Source: Eukaryota sp. TZLM1-RC (lineage: Eukaryota > Protista > Metamonada: BaSk clade). Taken from it: 64,000 nucleotides of DNA. Both the position numbers and the translations under genes were made by a program. The notes under the pieces are model-generated. The model worked only from the letters and a program-made list of their open reading frames with translations. It did not search any database and had not been told where the DNA came from. The stretch spans positions 124,001 through 188,000 of the forward strand of contig JAUPSS010000003.1 in assembly GCA_040285825.1 (NCBI GenBank), given 5' to 3'. Positions 1,287 to 61,780 of the stretch are shown here, piece by piece (the first letter of the stretch is position 1; each line of letters starts with the position of its first letter).

Positions 1287-2187
1287 GATGACGAAACGGA
1301 AATGGTGTTCTAGGCCATCGACCCCAACCACTCAAACCTATGTGGTTCCATTGGAACACGTTCAGGGCCGACCGTATCCAATATCTTCTTGGCACCAAAG
1401 CAACGAAATAAAGCAACGAAAAATAATTCACTCCACTTCACTGACCCACTCATCAATAGATGTTTTTGACGTGCAGAAATTGAACCATTATCTGCTTGAA
1501 ATATCAACTATCGGTGACTACAAGGACTATGAAGGTAATAACGCAAGACAATCATTGCTAAAGCAGCAATTATATCTGAGTGCTGGAAAAGCATTGAGAA
1601 GAAACACATTTGACTTCTTTATCAGAAAACAGAGAAGATTCAGCTCAATAATCAACAAGGTGAAAAAATTTGCAGACGGTCGAGAAGTAAAGGTGTGGTT
1701 TGGCAATGGAGGTGGTGGTCCATCACGTCAAAAAGTGAAAACACCACGCAAGGCATTTCTCAAGTTGTTACAACGTTCATTTGCTAATGTGAAGATCGGA
1801 GATGAATACATGACATCTGCAAAGGTGAACTGCTGCAAGATGCTACACCAAAAGATCTATTGGGAAGTTGATGGTGAAGTTAAAGTTCACAACGCCTATT
1901 TCAGTTGTCCGGAACGTAATCAAGTTTGGTCTAGAGACATTTCTGCATCACTAAATCATCTAGAAATTGCAATTAGTGAGCACTACTATGGAACAAGACC
2001 AGAAGCGTTCCAGAGACCACAAAGAAACTGGCTTCAAAGCTGCGTATTGTTCTAGAGGAGAAATGGGCTCACTGAGATTGGTGGCCAATTATTCGAGTTA
2101 TTCTAGAACGTCTGTGGACGATATCACCAAGGATGAAAGTTCTTGGAATAAGTTTGAATGATGCTTGAAGAAAGTATGCATTTCAAA
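1287..2187 (+). mobile_element. Fanzor family A, copy A1, 5'-truncated pseudogene with intact 3' end
   Basis: RuvC-I AIDPNHSNLCG lies in an alternative frame right after an in-frame TAG. Also WFGNG, RuvC-II GDEYMTSAK-x-NCC and CPERNQVWSRDISASLN (Zn finger plus RuvC-III). A 13-nt duplication near 1397-1422 shifts the frame. Highly similar to the reverse complement of 59786-60670. Confidence 0.9.
2030..2187 (+). ncRNA. Putative omega-RNA scaffold of Fanzor A1
   Basis: Identity with copy A2 continues ~155 nt past the ORF and stops abruptly after GTATGCATTTCAAA. Stems: GTTCTAGA..TCTAGAAC, ATTGG-TGG-CCAAT, CCAAGGA..TTCTTGG, and a terminal GAATG-ATGCTT..AAGTAT-G-CATTT. Confidence 0.75.
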
Positions 2188-42805: not shown

Positions 42806-43129
42806 GAGTTACATTTAGTTGTTTTGTTTTGGGTAAGATGATTAATTTAAATGTTGTTTTATTAGTTGTTTAATAAGCAAATATTATTTGAAAAAGTTAA
42901 ATTACCTTTTCAACTTTAATCAATTCATTACTTTAAGAAGTAAAGTGCACTAAAAATGTTAAAAAACAAAACATTTGCTTTGTATAAATTTTATATTCTT
43001 TTATATATATTCTTTTATTTATTTTTTTATGTTTATGAGATGCAGATCTTGTTGCCTCTTTGTTTTTGCTACCTTCTGCGTGTTGCAAGAATCTCTTTGT
43101 AACATTCACCTCATCCACCAGTCCTTCCC

Positions 43130-43390
43130 TGCTAAATAGGACGTAATCCTATGGGGAATAAAGATTCCGGTTTTAAAAGGAAAGGAAAGTGCCCATCTGA
43201 AGGTAAAAGTATAAGAAAAGTATTCATACCGTTTATCCTGTTTACTGAGTTAATGAGGCATTTACTTCAAAAAGATGTCACACCCATGCTAAAAAGGGTG
43301 AAATTGGAGAAAATGTAGAAACTTTATTGAAGTATGATGATCCAAACTTAACAAATAAATTGACCTCAATTAGACAGGAGATTCATGTCA
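43130..43390 (+). mobile_element. Fanzor family C-like fragment
   Basis: VILWG..GFKRKGKCPSEGKSIRKVF..VNEAFTSKRCH..VETLLKYDDPN across frameshifts. Confidence 0.6.
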
Positions 43391-43429
43391 GAAAAATGAA
43401 TCCAAAGCCTTCCACATCTAAAGGCCAAC

Positions 43430-45115
43430 ACCAATTACCCCATATCTTTTACAATTCTGGATTTCTTCCAGAATGCCCACAAGACAGGTCTCTTGTTTCT
43501 TTGTGGGAAAATTCTTTAGTGCCTTACAGAAATTCATTCAATCTTTTTCTCAATGCTTGGCTGCAATCTCAGAATTGTAATTTTATCAATAGAAAAGGGC
43601 TTTCTCCTTACCTTGCTTGTCGGGCTCGTCAATTGGCGTCTAACGTGAAGACAAGTTTACCTAAAATTTGTCAATCCTGGACAAAAAACTTTATTCGTGC
43701 TCATTGTAGAGCCCTGGATAAAACAAATGTCTTTGCAAATAATATTCTTTCACTTTTGCCAGATGAACCATTAGCCCAACCCGAGAAAGTAGTTGTTGAT
43801 TCTGTTCTTGAATACTACATCAATTTCAATTTGAATAATTCAAGAGAAAGATTCTTTTTATTAAATGTATGTAAGTTTATCTTGAATCTCCTTCAAAGAT
43901 TTCCTACCACTGCCTCCCTACTGTCCTCACATGATAAAATCACCTTTTCATCAAAGGAAATTGGTGAGCTTTTTTCTTCAATCTTGAAATTTCACAATAC
44001 TTACTCACTTTCTTTTCTCATATGCATTGCTGGAAGAAATTTGGAATAATACCTTTAGCTTCTCATAAATGTTCTAAATTTCATGAGGTACCTTCACATG
44101 TTTTCCAATCTGTGAAACAATTTCCAATTATTGAAAGATCATCTTCCAAAACAAAGTTTATCAAAAATACATGTCTAAAACGAATATTTAAACAATGTCC
44201 TTACCAAAAATTCAATATCAACAGAAAAAGTTTGAAAAATAGATTTAAAAAAATTTTATTGAAAAATAATGGTAATGAACTGCTTTTGACCTTTGAAGGT
44301 AAAAATAATGACTCAGAAAACACAGATGAGCTGGATGAACCACCGAAAAAGAAAAGAAGATCAAAAATGAAATGAAAAGTGACCCTAATGCCAACAAAAC
44401 CAGAGAAACACAGTTGAAGGGCACTAAAAAATGCCCCATCGAAGACGTAGAGAACCAGTCGAAATTTTACCTGAAATGCCCTTTATTGGCGTTAATCTTG
44501 GCCAATCAAGATTATGTGGTTACTTCTTAGATGATAATCAATGTGGAGTTATCCCTTGACCAACTGGCAGAAGATACATGACAAAACCTTCACCCAGCAA
44601 AACACTCTCCCAACCAATATTCCGTTCAAAATTTCAACCAATATTTGAAACATTGGAATTTGGTCAAGAAGAAAGTGTATTTGGAAAGTAATCGCCAGAA
44701 ATGGAAAATAATTAAATTTGATAACCGAAAAGAGAGACGGTTCAGAGAGAGTCTCCACAAATTTCAAAGGCTGGCCGGACATCCTGATAAACTCTACCTT
44801 GCTGTGGGTTCTGCTAATTTCCCTTCTCATTGCCGAAAAGTCAATCGATATGGATCAGCAAGGGCTTTCAGAAAATGGTTGTGTTATCAAAAGGATGTGA
44901 AGCACTTGTCAACCAGTGAATTTAATACAAGCAAACTGTCAAGTTGTTGCATGGCCGGGAATATTCAAGCAGGCTCATGGCAGATGCGTATTTGTACTGA
45001 GTGTCAAATAGTATATGACAGAGATATTTCCGCTGCAAAAAATATTCAAATTAAGAAGAAAGCCGAATTGTGCCCGGAAAGATACATTTGGCCAGAAGCT
45101 CTGTTGAGAAGATGA
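43430..45115 (+). mobile_element. Fanzor family B pseudogene
   Basis: REC-like RNSFNLFLNAW..ARQLASNVKTSL, RuvC-I PFIGVNLGQSRLCG (Asp replaced by Asn) near 44480, LYLAVGSANF, SEFNTSKLSSCC and CTECQIVYDRDISAAKNI. Confidence 0.85.
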
Positions 45116-45201
45116 ATAGGGAACGTGAGCATACAGAAACAAAAACTTTTGAAAAACTTTTGAGACCGATCTACAAATGCCTTAGTAGCATTTGGTAGAT
45201 C
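45116..45201 (+). ncRNA. Putative omega-RNA 3' part of Fanzor B
   Basis: Hairpin GATCTAC-AAATGC-(CTTAGTA)-GCATTT-G-GTAGATC at 45168-45201. It shares the AATGC..GCATTT core with the family-A terminal hairpin. Confidence 0.45.
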
Positions 45202-46100
45202 CACTTAGATACATCAAGTCGCGAGGCTTTGTTCTGTGAAAGCAGTAGGTGTATTCAAGTGATGTAGCCCATTGATGAAGATCATGATTGTCTTTGTCAA
45301 ATGATGCTACATGTCTCTTACAGTTTGTGAGTAGACATTGAGAAAGTTGAAAACAGGAGTGAATTTCACAGGGGAATGTATGATAAGTGAAATTCACAGT
45401 AGATTGTTGTGGTCTTAAGGCTAGTTTGAAGAGAGAAGAGGTGAGGAGAAAACGTTGAGATGCAGATATACCAACACCATGAGTGTCCCGTAATTAGGAG
45501 AGTGAAGTAGAGAGAAAGGGTACAGTGAAGAGGTTGAGGTGGGAACGAATGAGGGAAGAAGTGGTGGATGTAGGGGGAAGTGAGGCCTTTTGGAGCGCAG
45601 AGATGACACGTTTTATGTAGGAGTTAACAAAGTGTTGGAGAGACGGATCAGCATGAGAGGGGCGATGAGGTTGAGTAGTTTGGTTTTCTAGTAAGGATTG
45701 TTCTAGGAGTCAACATCTAAAGAAACAGCTTTACCAAAACTGGTCTAGATAGATTGATTGATTGGTGTTGAGGATGGATGAAATAGAAGTTGAATAGAGG
45801 TATGATCATGGTTGTAGGTCATTGAATAAGCAGATTCGTCTTGAAAAGTCCCAGTTGTGTGAAGTACGGACCTTTGAATGTTGAGATGAAAAACAAAGAA
45901 AAAGTATGATAAAGATGAATTTTGGATGATGAAACTGATGACAAACCATTTGAAACCCAATTACCAACATCAGTGACACAACATGCTGCTTTCAAGAGAG
46001 AAACACAACAGAAACCTGATGTCTCGATAGATGTACCTTTAATAAACTGTTTAAACAATCTTTATTTCAATATAGCAAATAGAAGAAAAGTTGTCGACAT
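45200..46100 (-). repeat. Unknown dispersed sequence X, divergent from and upstream of Fanzor A
   Basis: 45200-45400 is homologous to 61603-61780 (CKRHVASFDKDNHDLHQWATSLEYTYCFH vs CKKHVTVLDKNNHYLHHYVTSLEYTYCFH). Weaker patches match 9700-9885. Confidence 0.6.
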
Positions 46101-46162
46101 CGACACCAAATTTTGAAAATAACCCAAACTCAACAATCAATCATTTCTGATTGTCTGACACT

Positions 46163-48144
46163 ATGCCGTGTTCCGTCTGCCGGGCGGCCACCCACAACCG
46201 ACGTACTTGTCCTCAGAGACAAGTGTCATCACCAGATGATAATGGTTGGATTCCAGAAGCAGCGCACCACCCAAGTGCTGGCTTAAATGAGGGCGAAAGG
46301 CCACTCCCATTTGCAGTTCGCCCGCCACCAGACCCTCTCCCGTCTGCCACAACCACGACTGTGCATGTAAGCCTCCCAAGATTCTTTGCCTCTCGTGCTG
46401 CTCAAGCTATTGAGGCACAGCTTATTCACTTACGAGATGTTGCTTTCTATGCCACCTTATTGGCAAGAAAGCTTCTATTAGAATATCCGCATCTGTCCTG
46501 CTGGCTCGCTCACCGTCAATTCTGGTCGCAGTGCTTCGACTGCGTCACCCACAGTCGACCTAAAATTAGGGAGCCTTTCAAGAGCACTAACCCTGATGTC
46601 TATGAGGCTCTTACGCATATGACATCAAGTGCTACCTGGCCGTGGCCTCCGTTAGTAGAGGGCCAAGAACATCCACCCTTTTGTCAGGCTGCTCTTTTTA
46701 TCAATAGAGCTGTTCAACTCGAATCAGCTCACAGACAACTGCTGACCGATGGCCCTGTGACCTGGAAACTGAATTTCTTCAGGTCTATGGGTAAGCAGAT
46801 GGAGTGTCCTGCTCCATCAAAGTATGCCAGTTGTGTGGTTTCCGGTTCCACAATTTCTGAAAATTTAAGACAATGGTATGATGAATATCATTTTCATATT
46901 TCCAAAATTTGGAACCAAACAGTAACATCTAATGATTTGTATACGCGTGCCCTGAGGCGTGATGAATTGGATGTCACTGTTTATAATTGTTGGTTGATAA
47001 GCCATTGGGGATTGTCAATTTTACATCGTCTAGAAAGTACATGCCCAAATGTATTTCGAAGACATGCCTTATCCCCAATTGCCACCAAAGTTCCAGGGTT
47101 TGTTCCTTTTAATCAACAAGCTCTGGAATATTTCAAAAAATTGAATCCTAACCAACAATTATTACGGAACCCTTGTAAGTTTTTTAACAAGAAAAAATTA
47201 AAAACTTTCTCAGTTTCTAGCAATGGACTCTCATTGCGCTTCACTTTTTCAAAGAAACCCAAAAAGACGTGCACCAGGCGAAAAAATTCTGAAATTCAAG
47301 CATTGGGTCAAAGTCGTCCTTATTTCAGAGAGTCCACTAGAAAACGAAATAAGAGGCGAGCTAACCGACCGAGGAAAATTGCTAGACGGTCTCAAGATTG
47401 CTCGCAGGATCTGCCCATCAGAGAAGACCTTTTTTCGTGGCGGTTGATCCAAACCATTCAAATTTATGTGGTTGGACAACTGGACATTGTTCACAAGAGA
47501 ATAGGGTAATTGTTGAACAATCTGGAATTCTACTGAATCCGAAAGCAAAAGTAATTGATTTTCCCCAGCCACTCACTCAATCCTCTGTGAACACTTATTC
47601 CGTTGAGAGCTTCAACAGGTATCTCATTGAAATAGCTTCACTGATAAGGAATGATGAGCAGGAAACAATTTCTTTGGTTTCCCAAACATTGACCAATAGT
47701 ACAGAGAGAATTTTGAGACGAAATAAGTTTGATTTTGTGATAAGAAGACAAAAAAGGTTCATTCATTTTATTAACAAAATTAAGAGACTAGCTAATAACA
47801 GGGAAACTATTATTTGGTTTGGTAATGGTGGTAATGGACCTTCTCGACAATCCACCAAAGTCCCAACTAAGAAGTTTCTGACAGAAGTAAAGAAATACTT
47901 TGCCAATGTGAAGGTTGGAGATGAATACATGACATCTGCCAAAACCAATTGTTGCAAGGTACATCACAGGAAGGTGTATCATGAAGGCACTCGAAGAATC
48001 AATAATGCTTACTTTGAATGTCCTAGATGTGATGAACGCTGGTCTAGAGACATTTCCGCTTCAAGAAATAAGCTAGAGATTGCGATTTCTGAACATTTTA
48101 CTGGGATCAGACCAGAGACATTTAGAAGGGAGGTGAGAGAGTGA
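46163..48144 (+). CDS. Fanzor family A, copy A3: near-intact RNA-guided endonuclease (~660 aa if one T is restored at 47430-47435)
   Basis: N-terminal CSVCRAATHNRRTC knuckle, RuvC-I FVAVDPN, RuvC-II GDEYMTS, CC...CPRC Zn finger and RuvC-III SRDISASRN. A single frameshift falls in a T6 run. Confidence 0.92.
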
Positions 48145-48243
48145 TAGTTGTTTGTATCCATGTATTGCCTTCGGGCGCTGTGATCCTGAAAAGGAAACCG
48201 TATTAGGGAATGGAGGAATGCTACATGATGTATGCATTTCTGA
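48145..48243 (+). ncRNA. Putative omega-RNA scaffold of Fanzor A3
   Basis: GCC-TTCG-GGC (cUUCGg loop), TCCT-GAAA-AGGA (GNRA loop) and terminal GGAATGC-TACA-TGA-TGTA-T-GCATTTC. Shares the GTATGCATTTC end with A1 and A2. Confidence 0.8.
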
Positions 48244-48247
48244 TGAA

Positions 48248-48840
48248 CAGTGTTAGAATTCCGAACGTTCGGCCGAACTAGTTTTAGTTCATTTACACGT
48301 GTCAACACAGTTTTGTTTAAAAATGTTTTCCCAAATCCCTCTTTCAACTACTACAATAGATTTCATTGTTTAAAAATCTGTATTCATACATAAATCCCCT
48401 TCTTTACATCAACTTTCTTCAATGCCAAGGCACCCTGTTTACAAACTTCTGGACAACGTCAATTACGATAAAGTGTCCAAAAATATTACTTCACAGTGCT
48501 GCTGCAGTAAAATGCTAAAAGGTTCAGCCCGTCGCTTTTCCTCCCATTTCATTAAGAAGTATAGAGCTGAATATGCCTTATGTACTCAATTATCCACCAT
48601 TTATGTCAAGGATATAAACACTGTCCTAGGTTAATGACCTAGATTTAGATGTTGTAGAACTTTCTGAATAAAAGCTTACTTTGTTGGTTGATAGTGAGTA
48701 TAATAGTATAGGGAAGGAGAAGATAAACAGCGTTTTGATATTAATGAATCAAAACGAGATGCCGAACTAACCGAACGTATCAGTAGGTGCCGAACGTACG
48801 GCCGAACGTACGCCGAACTAGTTCAGTAATTCTAACATTG
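48248..48840 (+). mobile_element. Non-autonomous hAT element (MITE)
   Basis: TIRs CAGTGTTAGAATT / AATTCTAACATTG and an 8-bp TSD CTGATGAA / CCGATGAA. Subterminal CCGAAC repeats and an internal BED-finger relic MPRHPVYK..CCCSKMLKGSARRFSSHF. Confidence 0.88.
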
Positions 48841-48900
48841 CCGATGAAATTCACAGTTGTGGTCTTATTCTTAGTTGTTTTTTCTTCATTCAAACCAATA

Positions 48901-49920
48901 ATGTACCAACAGATGTATGGTACAGCGGTGGTTCCGGTACAAATGGCGCCTAATTTTGTCTATCAAGGTGTGCCAGCAGCTCAACCTAAACGCTCCATTC
49001 CAGAACGTAAGAAGAAGTCGTGTTGCACTAACTGTTGCTGTTGCTTCTTCTGTCTTTTTGTTTTTGCACTCATCTTTGGTGGTGCTTTAGTCATCTTTAA
49101 AACAATCCAGTGTGGAACTATTGATTGGCAGGAAATATCTACGTATGAATTCTCTCCCGAAGATGTATCAAACATTGATGTTTCTGCCGATCTTGCGTTT
49201 GTCAAGTTCAGCTATTCTAGTATTTCCAAGATCCAGGTTCATATACGTTTAGCTAACACAGACAGTTCTTCTGACGATGAAGTAAAACCTACATTGGAGG
49301 GTGGTTTGCTGAAAGTCGATTTAACTTCTGATCCTGTCTGGTTTCTTCTTCACTGTTTGCGAGCTGAAGTTGAAATTGAACTTCCTTTAAATCACCCGTT
49401 GAATTCAGTGGATATCCGCATCCCTGTTTTGGTCTCACACTCTATGTCATCCTCCACCACTGGTATTGATCTTGGTGAAATGAGCCTGGTGACTGTGGAC
49501 AAACTAAAGATTCGCACCGAAGTTGGTAAAGTCTTTGCCAAATCATTGAGGTCTAACCAGGTTGACATTCGTGGAACTCTGGAAGTTGCTTCGGTTTCTA
49601 TGTTCAATACCACCAATTCCGAAGGCGAAATTGTACGCGGTCAAATGTTTGTGAAATCGTTTGTCGGCTATCAAAAGTTTAATCTTTTACATCCCGGATA
49701 TTATGAATTTTCTTCAATTTCTGGCAAAATCTCACTTACTCTACATGAAACATTTTCAGGAAAGGTTTCAACATCTTCTCGTGGTAAAATTCGATATGAA
49801 GGGGAGCGATTGGTTGTTTCAGATAGTGGCGATCACTCTGTGAATTTTGAAGTTGGAGACGGAAATGATTTTGTCAATGTCCACAGCGAAACTGGGCAAT
49901 TAAGTCTCACAGCTCTTTGA
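48901..49920 (+). CDS. Single-pass membrane protein with DUF4097/adhesin-like beta-repeat ectodomain
   Basis: Likely start MYQQMYG, because the longer ORF begins inside the MITE. Cys-rich juxtamembrane stretch, TM helix and repeated x-S/T-x-x-G-x-I strands; AATAAA after the stop. Confidence 0.65.
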   Translation: MYQQMYGTAVVPVQMAPNFVYQGVPAAQPKRSIPERKKKSCCTNCCCCFFCLFVFALIFGGALVIFKTIQCGTIDWQEISTYEFSPEDVSNIDVSADLAFVKFSYSSISKIQVHIRLANTDSSSDDEVKPTLEGGLLKVDLTSDPVWFLLHCLRAEVEIELPLNHPLNSVDIRIPVLVSHSMSSSTTGIDLGEMSLVTVDKLKIRTEVGKVFAKSLRSNQVDIRGTLEVASVSMFNTTNSEGEIVRGQMFVKSFVGYQKFNLLHPGYYEFSSISGKISLTLHETFSGKVSTSSRGKIRYEGERLVVSDSGDHSVNFEVGDGNDFVNVHSETGQLSLTAL

Positions 49921-50710
49921 TTTTGTAAATAAAGTTGATTTAGGTTTTTATTACTCTTTCCCCAACTTGGTTTCCAGTATTCCACATTCAGCAGTTCAAC
50001 AATGAATTGATAAGGGAACTAAAAAATCAGTTTTAGAATTGATGAGGTAGTTGTAAGGAATCAATTGTATGAATGTAGATTTATTGAACTTTAGATAGCC
50101 ACATTTTCTATTGCGGATCAGCAAAGGTAAAAAGAACAATAAACACACAATTTCACCATTGCTATTGATGGGGTGATGCCCTCTAGTTAATAATCCAATA
50201 CACAACATTCAAGAACGAAAGATAATTTGATGCAGAAGATATGTAGTTTTCTCCTCCATTTTACAGAATTCGCTACAATGAATTGTACAAATGAATAAAA
50301 ATCGATCTTGTGATTTGAAAGAAAGAGAACTTACAAAATCGTAATAATATTTTTGACAAAAAATTGGAGTGTACTTTTCCACTGTATTCACATGCTAATA
50401 TACCAGTAGTTTATATGTTGTTCAATCACAAGACTTGATCATTGATTATTGTGGTTTTGCAGAGCTTCTTTCTTATTTGTCAATCAAGTATTCAATGTAT
50501 TCAATTGACTAGAAAAAGCATAACTAGATGATCGACTAACACTTATGCGATTATAGGCTGAACAGATGAATTACCATTGAAATTATTTAAATTACCATTG
50601 AAGAAGTACTTGAAATTGTTGTTGTTTGTGAAATGAGTTATTATACAAATACAAAAACAAATGTAGTTTATTAAATAACAAAGAGTTTCGACAATAGTAT
50701 ACAAAGGAAT

Positions 50711-58980: not shown

Positions 58981-59130
58981 CAAAACCTCCACCCAGTAAA
59001 CACTCTCCCAACCAATATTTCAACCAATATTTGAACCATTGGATTTTGGTCAGGAGGAAGGTGTATTCAAAAAAGTAATCGCCAGAAATGGAAAATAATT
59101 AAATTTGATAACCGCAGACGAAAAGAGAGA
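58981..59130 (+). mobile_element. Fanzor family B internal fragment
   Basis: Close nucleotide match to 44582-44738 (AACACTCTCCCAACCAATATT...AATCGCCAGAAATGGAAAATAATTAAATTTGATAACCG). Confidence 0.85.
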
Positions 59131-59767: not shown

Positions 59768-59785
59768 TGCAATCTGTGGTTTTCA

Positions 59786-61602
59786 TTTGAAATGCATACT
59801 TTCGTCAAGCATCATTCAAACTTATTCCAAGAACTTACATTCTTGGTGAGATCGTCCACAGACGTTCTAGAATCCTTGAATAATTGGCCACCAATCTCAG
59901 TAAGCCCATTTCTCCTCTAGAACAATACGTAGCTTTGAAGCTAATTTTTTGGTGGTCTCTGGAACGCTTCTGGTCTTGTTCCATAGTACTGCTCACTAAT
60001 TGCAATTTCTAGATGATTTAGTGATGCAGAAATGTCTCTAGACCATTCTTGATTACATTCCGGACAACTGAAATAGGCGCTGTGAACTTTAACTTCATCA
60101 TCAACTTCTCGATAGATCTTTTGGTGTAGCATCTTGCAGCAGTTCGCCTTTGCAGATGTCTTATATTCATCTCCGATCTTCACGTTAGCAAATGAACATT
60201 GTAACAACTTGAGAAACGCCTTACGTGGTGTTTTCACTTTTTGACGTGATGTTTCATCACCTCCATTGCCAAACCACACCTTTACTTCTTGACCGTTTGC
60301 AAATTTTTTCACTTTGTTGATAATTGAGCTGATTCTTTTTTGTTTTCTTATGAAGAAGTCAAATGTGTTTCTCCTCAATGCTTTTCGAGCACTCAGATAT
60401 AATTGCTGCTTTAGCAATGATCGTCTTACGTTATTACCTTCATAGTCCTTATAGTCACCGATAGTTGATATTTCAAGCAGATAATGGTTCCATTTCTGCA
60501 CGTCAAAAACATCTATTGATGAGTGGGTCAGTGAAGCAGAGTGAATTATTTTTCGTTGCTTTCGTGCCAAGAAGATATTGGATACGGTCGGCCCTGAACG
60601 TGTTCCAATGGAACCACATAGATTTGAGTGGTTGGGGTCGATGGCCTAGAACACCATTTCCATTTCGTCATCAGGTGCCTGCCACTCAGTAGCTTTTGGT
60701 TTCTGGCGAGGTCTTGGCCGTTCAACCTTGGCTTGCAAGGCATGTTTTCTATTCCGAGTGGTTTCATAGTAATCAAGTTCCCCTCTGGATCTCTTATCAG
60801 CCAAGGCTTCTCCGGACAATCTCACTCGTGTTGCTTTTGGGTGCGGTTTGAAAGTTATACGGACACTATCACCATTAGAAGACATGGTGTAGTCATTAGC
60901 TTTTGGTCTAAAAAATAAATAGGGGTTTTTCAAAATTGTCTGTGATGTGTTTTTGGTCATAAAATGGTTGAGAACCCATGTGGAAAAGGGAACAAAAGCA
61001 GGCTTCAAACTAGCAATAGGAGTGAGTCTCTGTGGTCTGAAGCTATGGGGAAAGGCTTGTTCGAGGTGGTTTTGGATTGTTAATCCGCAACGAAAGATGT
61101 AGGTACTGTTGCCTTGATTAAGGGTCACTCTTCGGGAAGAAAAAACAGTGTTGTACCTTTGCAGATCACGAACCAATAAGTTAAATAGACTAGCAGCCAA
61201 TGTATGGTGTGTGTTGAACCAAGACAGAAGAAGTTCCCGAAAAATCGTCTTGAAGTACAGAGCCAACATAAGTGGCTAATGCAGGGCAGTTTTGACCCAT
61301 TGCATACGAACAAAAGAAGTTGAGCTTCCAAGACACAAGATCATCAGTTAAAAGCTCCTGGTGGTTGTCTCGCAGCTGGCGGCACTTCGTATCCACTAGT
61401 TGCTGGAGAGGCCTACTAGTGGGTAGTTCAGATTATGACCTTTTCTTGACATAAACAAGACAGCAAACAGCCATGATGTAGAAATTTGCTGGAACTTCTC
61501 ATACACATGACCTTTGCCAGGTCTTTTGAATGGATGTTTGACGTTTGGGTCAGAGACTGCCACAAAGTCAAGAAACTGGATTCAGCATTGATGCTGGGTC
61601 AG
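59786..61602 (-). mobile_element. Fanzor family A, copy A2, 5'-truncated, with omega-RNA-like tail at 59786-59940
   Basis: ORF 60646-61269 and ORF 59941-60570 are in frame across one TAG. AIDPN, GDEYKTS and CPEC..SRDISAS motifs; tail near-identical to A1. Confidence 0.92.
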
Positions 61603-61780
61603 TTGCAATGAATTTCACATATCAAGGTTTCGAGTTTCTCAATTTCTATTCACAGGATGTAAAAAACATGTAACGGTATTAGACAAAAACAATCATTATC
61701 TTCATCACTATGTTACCTCACTTGAATACACCTACTGCTTTCACACAACAAATTTTCGACTCTACGAAGTCCGTTGGATC
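61603..61780 (+). repeat. Second copy of unknown sequence X, abutting the truncated 5' end of Fanzor A2
   Basis: TCACTTGAATACACCTACTGCTTTCACA is shared exactly with the reverse complement of 45235-45262. Confidence 0.8.

Follow-up and report, generated by a model that had tools for sequence, protein, structure and literature searches.

A repeat on both sides of a Fanzor1 element in the metamonad Eukaryota sp. TZLM1-RC is probably a composite of a shared element terminus and a target-site duplication

The window analysed here is a 64 kb stretch of the genome of the metamonad Eukaryota sp. TZLM1-RC (assembly GCA_040285825.1, contig JAUPSS010000003.1, positions 124,001-188,000). It contains the copies A1, A2 and A3 of a family of Fanzor elements (family A), relics of a second Fanzor family (family B), a miniature inverted-repeat transposable element (MITE) in the tail of A3 and a host gene downstream of A3 (Table 1). 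A first-pass annotation had described that the sequence around the end of A3, where a guide RNA would be expected, reappears upstream of the Fanzor gene, split by seven nucleotides and next to a sequence named X. It had offered two explanations, a fixed guide directed against X, or site-specific insertion at X with duplications of 20-30 bp and subsequent cutting and scarring of the duplicate. The strings quoted at A3 and A2 were all found at the positions claimed. The MITE is real as well, and its removal in silico restored the normal family end GCATTTC-YGA-TGAAATTCACAG.

Eleven further family-A loci were fetched from the same assembly (L003 denotes the window itself), with roughly 150 kb of sequence obtained. 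Fanzor1 proteins were recognised by their homology to characterised members of the group, by a split RuvC motif and by a C4 zinc finger with RD behind it. According to an alignment with an intact copy, the Fanzor gene of A3 is disrupted by two deletions, one of 9 nt after 47354 and one of 1 nt after 47429. Its two pieces were searched apart and an intact paralogue was used besides; intact family-A copies exist, e.g. in L001 and L002. The A protein could not be placed by single-sequence searches of Pfam and PDB, which gave too weak a signal, and a profile was therefore built from 16 sequences of the family and its few relatives. It matched SpuFz1 (8gkh; E 2.5e-43), PpFz1 (E 3.3e-26) and GtFz1 (E 2e-19). 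These matches to solved Fanzor1 proteins and the conserved residues D432 and E591, the zinc-finger cysteines C601, C623 and C626, and the pair R632-D633 identify family A, on sequence grounds, as Fanzor1. Relatives at E <= 0.001 numbered only 64 among 1.84 billion representatives. The N-terminal piece of the broken gene had 89% identity to a protein of Eukaryota sp. TZLM1-RC in a cluster of 17 members. The Pfam TNB score was below the cut-off for the A protein and above it for the B protein, in which the C-terminal reading-frame piece carries the domain with E 3e-07.

The repeat consists of two adjoining parts. The first, the 12-mer TGAAATTCACAG, occurs at 45388-45399 and 48845-48856, and no other exact match exists in the 64 kb. 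All 12 A3-type copies, i.e. A3 and the 11 fetched ones, have the right end in common. Ten of the 11 end in ...GCATTTCCGATGAAATTCACAG, or in fuller form ...GTATGCATTTCCGATGAAATTCACAG, and the last base is mutated in L012 (CACAT); the flanks of all 11 are unrelated from the base right after CACAG. Family B behaves in the same way. In L005, L006, L008 and L009 the alignment of its copies or tails extends as far as CACAG and is lost beyond this point, and the tails of L005, L006 and L009 end in ...GTGAAATTCACAG, the same 12-mer together with a hairpin. Because all copies run through TGAAATTCACAG and diverge right after CACAG, the 12-mer is the right terminus, conserved in both Fanzor families, and a part of the folded tail, not a guide.

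In the predicted fold of each tail the final 6-8 bases form part of a closing stem. This stem is CUGUGA:UCACAG in the A3-type tail (z -2.5; formed by CTGTGA at 48178-48183 and TCACAG at the terminus), CUGUGG:CCACAG in the A2 tail (z -3.4) and CUGUGAAA:UUUCACAG in the B tail (z -3.7). In A2 an A-to-G change is matched by U-to-C in the partner and the stem is preserved, which indicates that CCACAG is the terminus of A2 itself and not a copy of TTCACAG of family B. With the 12-mer conserved at the ends of both families and paired inside the tail fold, the proposal of a fixed guide directed against X lost its basis. Copy ends and tail folds alike indicate that the scaffold extends through TGAAAnnCACAG, an outcome which the first-pass annotation had set beforehand as speaking against its own reading. 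An Rfam scan of 43000-50000 returned one sub-threshold chance match only.

The second part of the repeat is the 11-mer TTGTGGTCTTA, which likewise has no exact match in the 64 kb outside its two positions. The order along the locus is the B end, TAGATTG, TTGTGGTCTTA, the insertion 45418-48856, TTGTGGTCTTA again and the host flank. The two copies of TTGTGGTCTTA are a target-site duplication (TSD) around this insertion. The seven bases which had been taken for a scar within a cut duplicate are untouched target DNA ending in GATTG. The insertion starts with an alternative 5' region in place of the usual family 5' part. The stretch 45598-45860 is common to A3 and L006, two unrelated loci, and is contiguous with the A core in both, whereas the other copies diverge at 45860. 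Since L006 has this stretch joined to the core elsewhere, it is a part of the mobile element. The variant 5' region 45418-45859 contained no meaningful open reading frame (ORF) and, in the window and the fetched loci, had no match beyond L006.

The sequence X (45228-45352) is a part of the 3' tail of the older B relic, and so is GATAAG at 45382-45387, directly before the 12-mer. GATAWG, formerly proposed as the target-adjacent motif (TAM), can accordingly be set aside; the motif before the left TSD is (T)ATTG. A near-copy of the 12-mer, TGAATTTCACAG at 45360-45371, forms the other arm of the perfect 11-bp terminal hairpin of B. Copies of family B are older than those of family A (83-95% identity), and no clear TSDs were found among them.

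Table 1 Features of the window, with positions given in the window unless a locus is named
Feature	Position	Strand	Basis or remark
A1, strongly 5'-truncated copy of the A2 subfamily	1288-2187	+	3' end departs from A2 after GCATTTCAAA
Family-B Fanzor relic	43401-45399 (start approximate)	+	decayed ORF, C-terminal piece 44645-45115, structured 3' tail
B terminal hairpin	45360-45399	+	arms GTGAATTTCAC and GTGAAATTCAC, element end CACAG (45399); kept in four B tails
Target DNA between B end and A3 insertion, TAGATTG	45400-45406	+	target motif GATTG in its last five bases
Left TSD copy of A3, 11 bp, TTGTGGTCTTA	45407-45417	+	match flush with insertion
Alternative 5' region of A3 (442 bp)	45418-45859	+	replaces usual family 5' part; comparison with other copies
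A3 core, Fanzor1 element	45860-48247	+	98% identity to 11 other fetched copies
Fanzor1 gene, dead copy	46163-48144	+	aligned to intact copy
omega-RNA-like tail	48145-48247	+	fold z -2.5
MITE, 593 bp	48248-48840	.	inserted 9 bases before A3 element end, splitting A3 tail
A3 last 16 bases, CCGATGAAATTCACAG	48841-48856	+	true right end 48856; 10 of 11 other copies end identically
Right TSD copy of A3, 11 bp	48857-48867	+	would open any guide read out of A3
Host gene	48901-49920	+	same strand as A3, 44 nt downstream of element end
A2 right TSD copy, 7 bp, ATTGCAA	59767-59773	-	overlaps A of host ATG
A2, 5'-truncated copy, sister subfamily	59774-61602	-	terminus ...TGAAAACCACAG
A2 left TSD copy, ATTGCAA	61603-61609	-	anchored match
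Short B-tail relic, second X copy	61610-61752	-	ends in TGAAATTC, without final ACAG
Divergent 178-aa ORF	L002 2991-3525, L004 2989-3525, L010 4988-5524	-	conserved among copies

The arrangement at A2 is similar. Its terminus GTATGCATTTCAAATGAAAACCACAG at 59799-59774 (-) is followed by ATTGCAA at 59773-59767, and its left junction at 61617-61603 (-) reads TGAAATTC and again ATTGCAA. A longer TSD of 19 nt was considered for A2 and rejected, as its CCACAG pairs with its own CTGTGG. Insertion with duplication and 5' truncation, as the first-pass annotation had proposed, was borne out for these elements; the duplications measure 11 bp at A3 and 7 bp at A2, and not 20-30 bp.

The survey of insertions covered 13 copies, the 12 of the A3 type and A2. 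The fixed 3' end of the 12 A3-type copies stands against 10 different 5' starts, which in L002 coordinates lie at 2226 (L002 and L005), 2554, 2680, 2989, 3710, 4343, 4636 and 4723, in addition to the variant subfamily. Exact matches anchored at the start of the 3' flank and at the 5' junction were 11 nt long in the window (A3), 9 nt in L007 (3 nt of them microhomology with the element) and 7 nt in both L005 and A2, and L010 showed an anchored match of 13/14. When the 5' junction of each copy was paired with the 3' flank of another copy as a control (132 pairs), the anchored match never exceeded 5 nt. The TSD lengths overall were 14 (13/14 matching), 11, 9, 7 and 7 nt, and 4 nt in three cases. 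The 5-mer before the left TSD was GATTG once (window), TATTG four times (L002, L005, L007 and L010) and TATTC and AATTC once each, which amounts to (T)ATTG in 5 and ATTC in 2 of the 12 copies at a background ATTG frequency of 0.0084 per position. Filler bases or a (TA)n run were present at some 5' junctions. Intact 3' ends, varied 5' ends and variable TSDs after a fixed motif are the features by which the Fanzor1 elements CRe-1/2/3 of Chlamydomonas reinhardtii are recognised, and all of them are found here.

Taken together, the upstream repeat is probably a composite of the 12-mer which ends Fanzor elements of both families and of the 11-bp TSD of a later A insertion. On this reading an older B element landed about 50 nt upstream of the host start codon. 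Later an A element with a variant 5' region inserted directly after GATTG, with 7 nt left between it and the B end, and duplicated 11 bp. More generally, insertion may be anchored at the 3' end of the element. The target would be opened immediately 3' of (T)ATTG, the base that follows this motif would be joined to the right end, and copying would run from the right toward the left end. The left side would then be closed imprecisely by end-joining across a staggered break, a step expected to yield duplications of 4-14 bp, microhomology or filler, and 5' truncation or foreign 5' sequence. The 3' end alone would suffice for mobility, because the chimeric 5' variant reached at least two loci (window and L006). 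A DNA-level, one-ended and rolling-circle-like route, as proposed for CRe-1/2/3, is a possible means of mobilisation, which we put at somewhat below an even chance.

Several observations weigh against this interpretation. Only 13 copies underlie the insertion pattern. Of these, L004, L008, L009 and L011 have no clean TSD, and the duplication measures 4 nt only in L001, L002 and L006. At A2 the B relic is without its last 4 bases, a loss for which a simple TSD model does not account. A1 has neither the terminal 12-mer nor the CCACAG partner of its own CTGTGG. No transposase, Rep protein or reverse transcriptase (RT) with matching ends was found in the loci fetched, and the mechanism is read solely from the scars. 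The best inverted match between the element ends was 13/15 with a 2-nt gap, lies inside an (ATTCCC)n tract and was equalled by 4.8% of shuffles (p about 0.05). As a further limit, the position at which the guide would start, directly behind CACAG, is deduced from the comparison of copies and from the tail folds. As to A1, its 3' end is either rearranged or holds a small insertion, and no clear TSD was found at 1288-2210. Among the hallmarks of Helitron2-type elements, the 3' hairpin was present and the 5' hairpin weak; a RepHel gene was not found in the roughly 150 kb fetched.

Apart from the intronless Fanzor gene, the full-length A element of 3.9 kb holds only one ORF, a divergent one of about 178 aa that lies about 475 bp upstream of the gene. 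This ORF is kept in full-length and long copies and is missing from the copy in the window. It belonged to no Pfam family, and an Atlas lead was not reliable (best score 0.89). A TnpA-like transposase was considered for it and rejected, since no HUH motif is visible. The Fanzor1 protein opens with a CCHC zinc knuckle (C-x2-C-x4-H-x4-C; window 46163-46220), which is kept in intact copies and is of the type present in retroelement nucleocapsid and ORF1 proteins.

The pattern itself is not without precedent. For CRe-1/2/3, Fanzor1-bearing non-autonomous Helitron2 elements, Bao and Jurka (2013) reported that 3' ends are intact and that 5' truncation is frequent. On truncated copies they described TSDs of about 7-19 bp, placed immediately behind TTTT, TTTG or TTTC, and additional or captured sequence was likewise reported at the 5' side (PMC3627910). 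MCi-2, a Fanzor1 element of Mucor circinelloides, combines one 3' region with different 5' regions, has 11-12-bp TSDs and lacks terminal inverted repeats (PMC3627910). In view of these reports from 2013, the claim of a new mode of Fanzor biology was overstated. Saito et al. (2023) reported that the guide RNA of Cre-1 crosses the 3' end into the TSD (10.1101/2023.06.13.544871). As this type of element duplicates its target and its guide enters the 3' TSD, the reappearance of the first bases of the guide upstream, as left TSD, is an expected by-product.

The elements described here resemble CRe-1/2/3 in several respects, as they encode no transposase, keep a fixed 3' end but lose 5' sequence, carry extra or captured sequence on the 5' side and have variable TSDs after a fixed short motif. 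They differ in the motif, (T)ATTG or ATTC instead of a T-rich tetranucleotide, in the terminus ...TTCACAG, in the marginal nature of the asymmetric terminal inverted repeats, in the lack of any known Helitron with matching ends in the genome, in the intronless gene and in the metamonad host; moreover, about half of the copies here lie just upstream of a same-strand start codon. With MCi-2 they share a near-identical 3' region joined to different 5' regions, "fuzzy" 5' ends and an unclassified mobility, whereas MCi-2 is larger (its common 3' region is 6 kb), has the pattern ATAATTNNNN within the TSD and not before it, and carries a partial Crypton gene in one subfamily. Elements of the IS200/IS605 group with TnpB (ISDra2 and IS608) are comparable in their short motif 5' of the left end, which is the TAM there, in a guide read from the right flank and in structured ends. 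They form no TSD, have two fixed ends and need TnpA; the TSDs and variable 5' ends found here do not agree with an insertion of the IS200/IS605 type.

Retroposons mobilised by long interspersed nuclear elements (LINEs), such as short interspersed nuclear elements and processed copies, also have a fixed 3' end and are truncated at the 5' end; variable TSDs accompany them, their 5' junctions show microhomology or filler, and they undergo 5' transduction. Retrotransposition in trans, in which a LINE-type RT recognises the 3' end of the Fanzor transcript and copies it into a nicked target (target-primed reverse transcription), would therefore produce the whole set of scars, including the chimeric 5' region common to the window copy and L006. 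The fetched loci hold LINE-like RVT_1 genes, and the CCHC knuckle at the start of the Fanzor1 protein would suit this route as well. However, the 3.9-kb element has no RT ORF and ends in neither poly(A) nor a simple-repeat tail, and its cargo is a DNA-transposon-type nuclease gene with an upstream divergent ORF. The single LINE 3' end examined, in L009, has no tail in common with the Fanzor elements, and a 2026 review finds no evidence of retrotransposons encoding Fanzor (PMC13565253). The loss of introns offers no test, the gene being intronless. On balance, we consider retrotransposition in trans rather unlikely. The LINE-like element of L009 (8773-11483 (-); RVT_1 gene, 762 aa) lies inside a B-family Fanzor copy and has a short A-rich duplication.

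Alternatively, the TSDs could be footprints of cleavage by Fanzor itself. The nuclease would make a staggered TAM-distal break at TATTG and the adjoining flank, copying from a donor would start at the right flank and abort, and end-joining would keep the TAM-proximal 4-14 nt. The left TSD always lies directly 3' of a fixed motif, as expected of a TAM, every TSD is shorter than a guide of roughly 20 nt, and filler and microhomology are typical of end-joining. The report that TSDs are frequent in Fanzor-bearing elements, as opposed to 1/200 of related non-Fanzor Helitrons, points in the same direction (Bao and Jurka 2013; PMC3627910). The difficulty is that the cut site must match the donor flank, so that new loci could not be seeded, yet the chimeric variant is present at two loci with different flanks; besides, (T)ATTG, as read from insertion sites, is a candidate TAM only. 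This makes an origin of the TSDs in cleavage by Fanzor unlikely as a whole. Were it true, (T)ATTG would be the TAM, the retained 4-14 nt would give the distance to the cut and copying would proceed without any transposase. It would also account for the TSDs and the 5' truncation which accompany Fanzor-bearing elements both here and in Chlamydomonas, and RNA-guided cleavage in a eukaryote would have left a natural record of itself in these scars.

Self-targeting in the sense of the first-pass annotation, with a fixed Fanzor guide that matches the linked X upstream, GATAWG as TAM and indel scars left by repeated cutting, is highly improbable. The 23/30-nt match upstream of the gene and the TAM-like GATTG before its 11-nt part speak for it, but 12 of the 23 nt are the element terminus found in all copies and in family B, and GATAWG lies inside the B tail. 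The true match to the flank comprises 11 nt and is followed by divergence, in place of a full spacer of about 16-20 nt next to a TAM; given the guide requirements of TnpB and Fanzor, 11 nt is too short for cleavage. The supposed 7-nt scar holds a target motif seen at four other loci, the window copy is dead (frameshift in the gene, MITE in the tail), and most other copies have no X directly upstream. Chance similarity or a local tandem duplication unrelated to insertion is a negligible option, for which one could cite the match of only 7 nt at A2, not significant by unanchored local alignment, but the 11-mer of A3 is unique in the window outside the two junctions, the duplications are flush with both element boundaries, and the pattern recurs at independent loci after the same motif.

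The composite reading removes a false lead, as the window locus contains neither a self-targeting guide nor a scarred protospacer. It sets the boundary between scaffold and guide for two Fanzor1 families, the guide being expected to start right after CACAG, and provides (T)ATTG as a candidate TAM read from insertion sites. The 3'-anchored, TSD-forming and 5'-truncated behaviour of Fanzor1 elements, described earlier in a green alga and a mould, is found here in a metamonad as well. This wider spread suggests that some Fanzor1 elements behave in this way generally and that the behaviour is not peculiar to a single Helitron family.

Seven of the 13 copies (A3, A2, L001, L004, L006, L008 and L010) have a start codon on the same strand 6-111 nt downstream of their end. 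A3, A2, L006 and L008 are each preceded, at a distance of 0-450 bp, by a B tail of the same orientation. Site-specific insertion at X was not confirmed: among the 11 other copies, a B tail directly upstream was present in L006 and L008 only, and in L005 it lies downstream on the opposite strand. It looks as if successive elements land before the same gene and push older ones upstream.

The B termini are of two kinds, a short one (...AGGAGTGAAATTCACAG; L008 5686-5702 and the relic beside A2) and a long one with 28 extra bases (window 45360-45399). These additional bases are similar to the final ~28 nt of an A-type tail; the long terminus may represent an extremely 5'-truncated tail insertion which later became part of B. 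A2 is followed downstream by a host gene, and just past the 3' end of this gene lies an internal B fragment of 130 nt at 58981-59114 (+), with 90-92% identity to 44582-44727. The MITE in the tail of A3 has an 8-bp TSD (CTGATGAA / CCGATGAA, at 48240-48247 and 48841-48848) and imperfect terminal inverted repeats (CAGTGTTAGAATT / CAATGTTAGAATT), and a related MITE copy is present in L004 (269-470).

Each tail is closed by a GTATG...CACAG unit of 22-26 nt (window 48230-48856; 59799-59774 (-); 45376-45399). In form the unit is like a GT...AG intron of very small size, and TTCACA is similar to start sites of the initiator type. The element terminus CCGATGAAATTCACAG contains an ATG at which the public annotation starts the host gene (48844), in frame with the ORF from 48901, and the end of the element may serve host genes as leader or start sequence.

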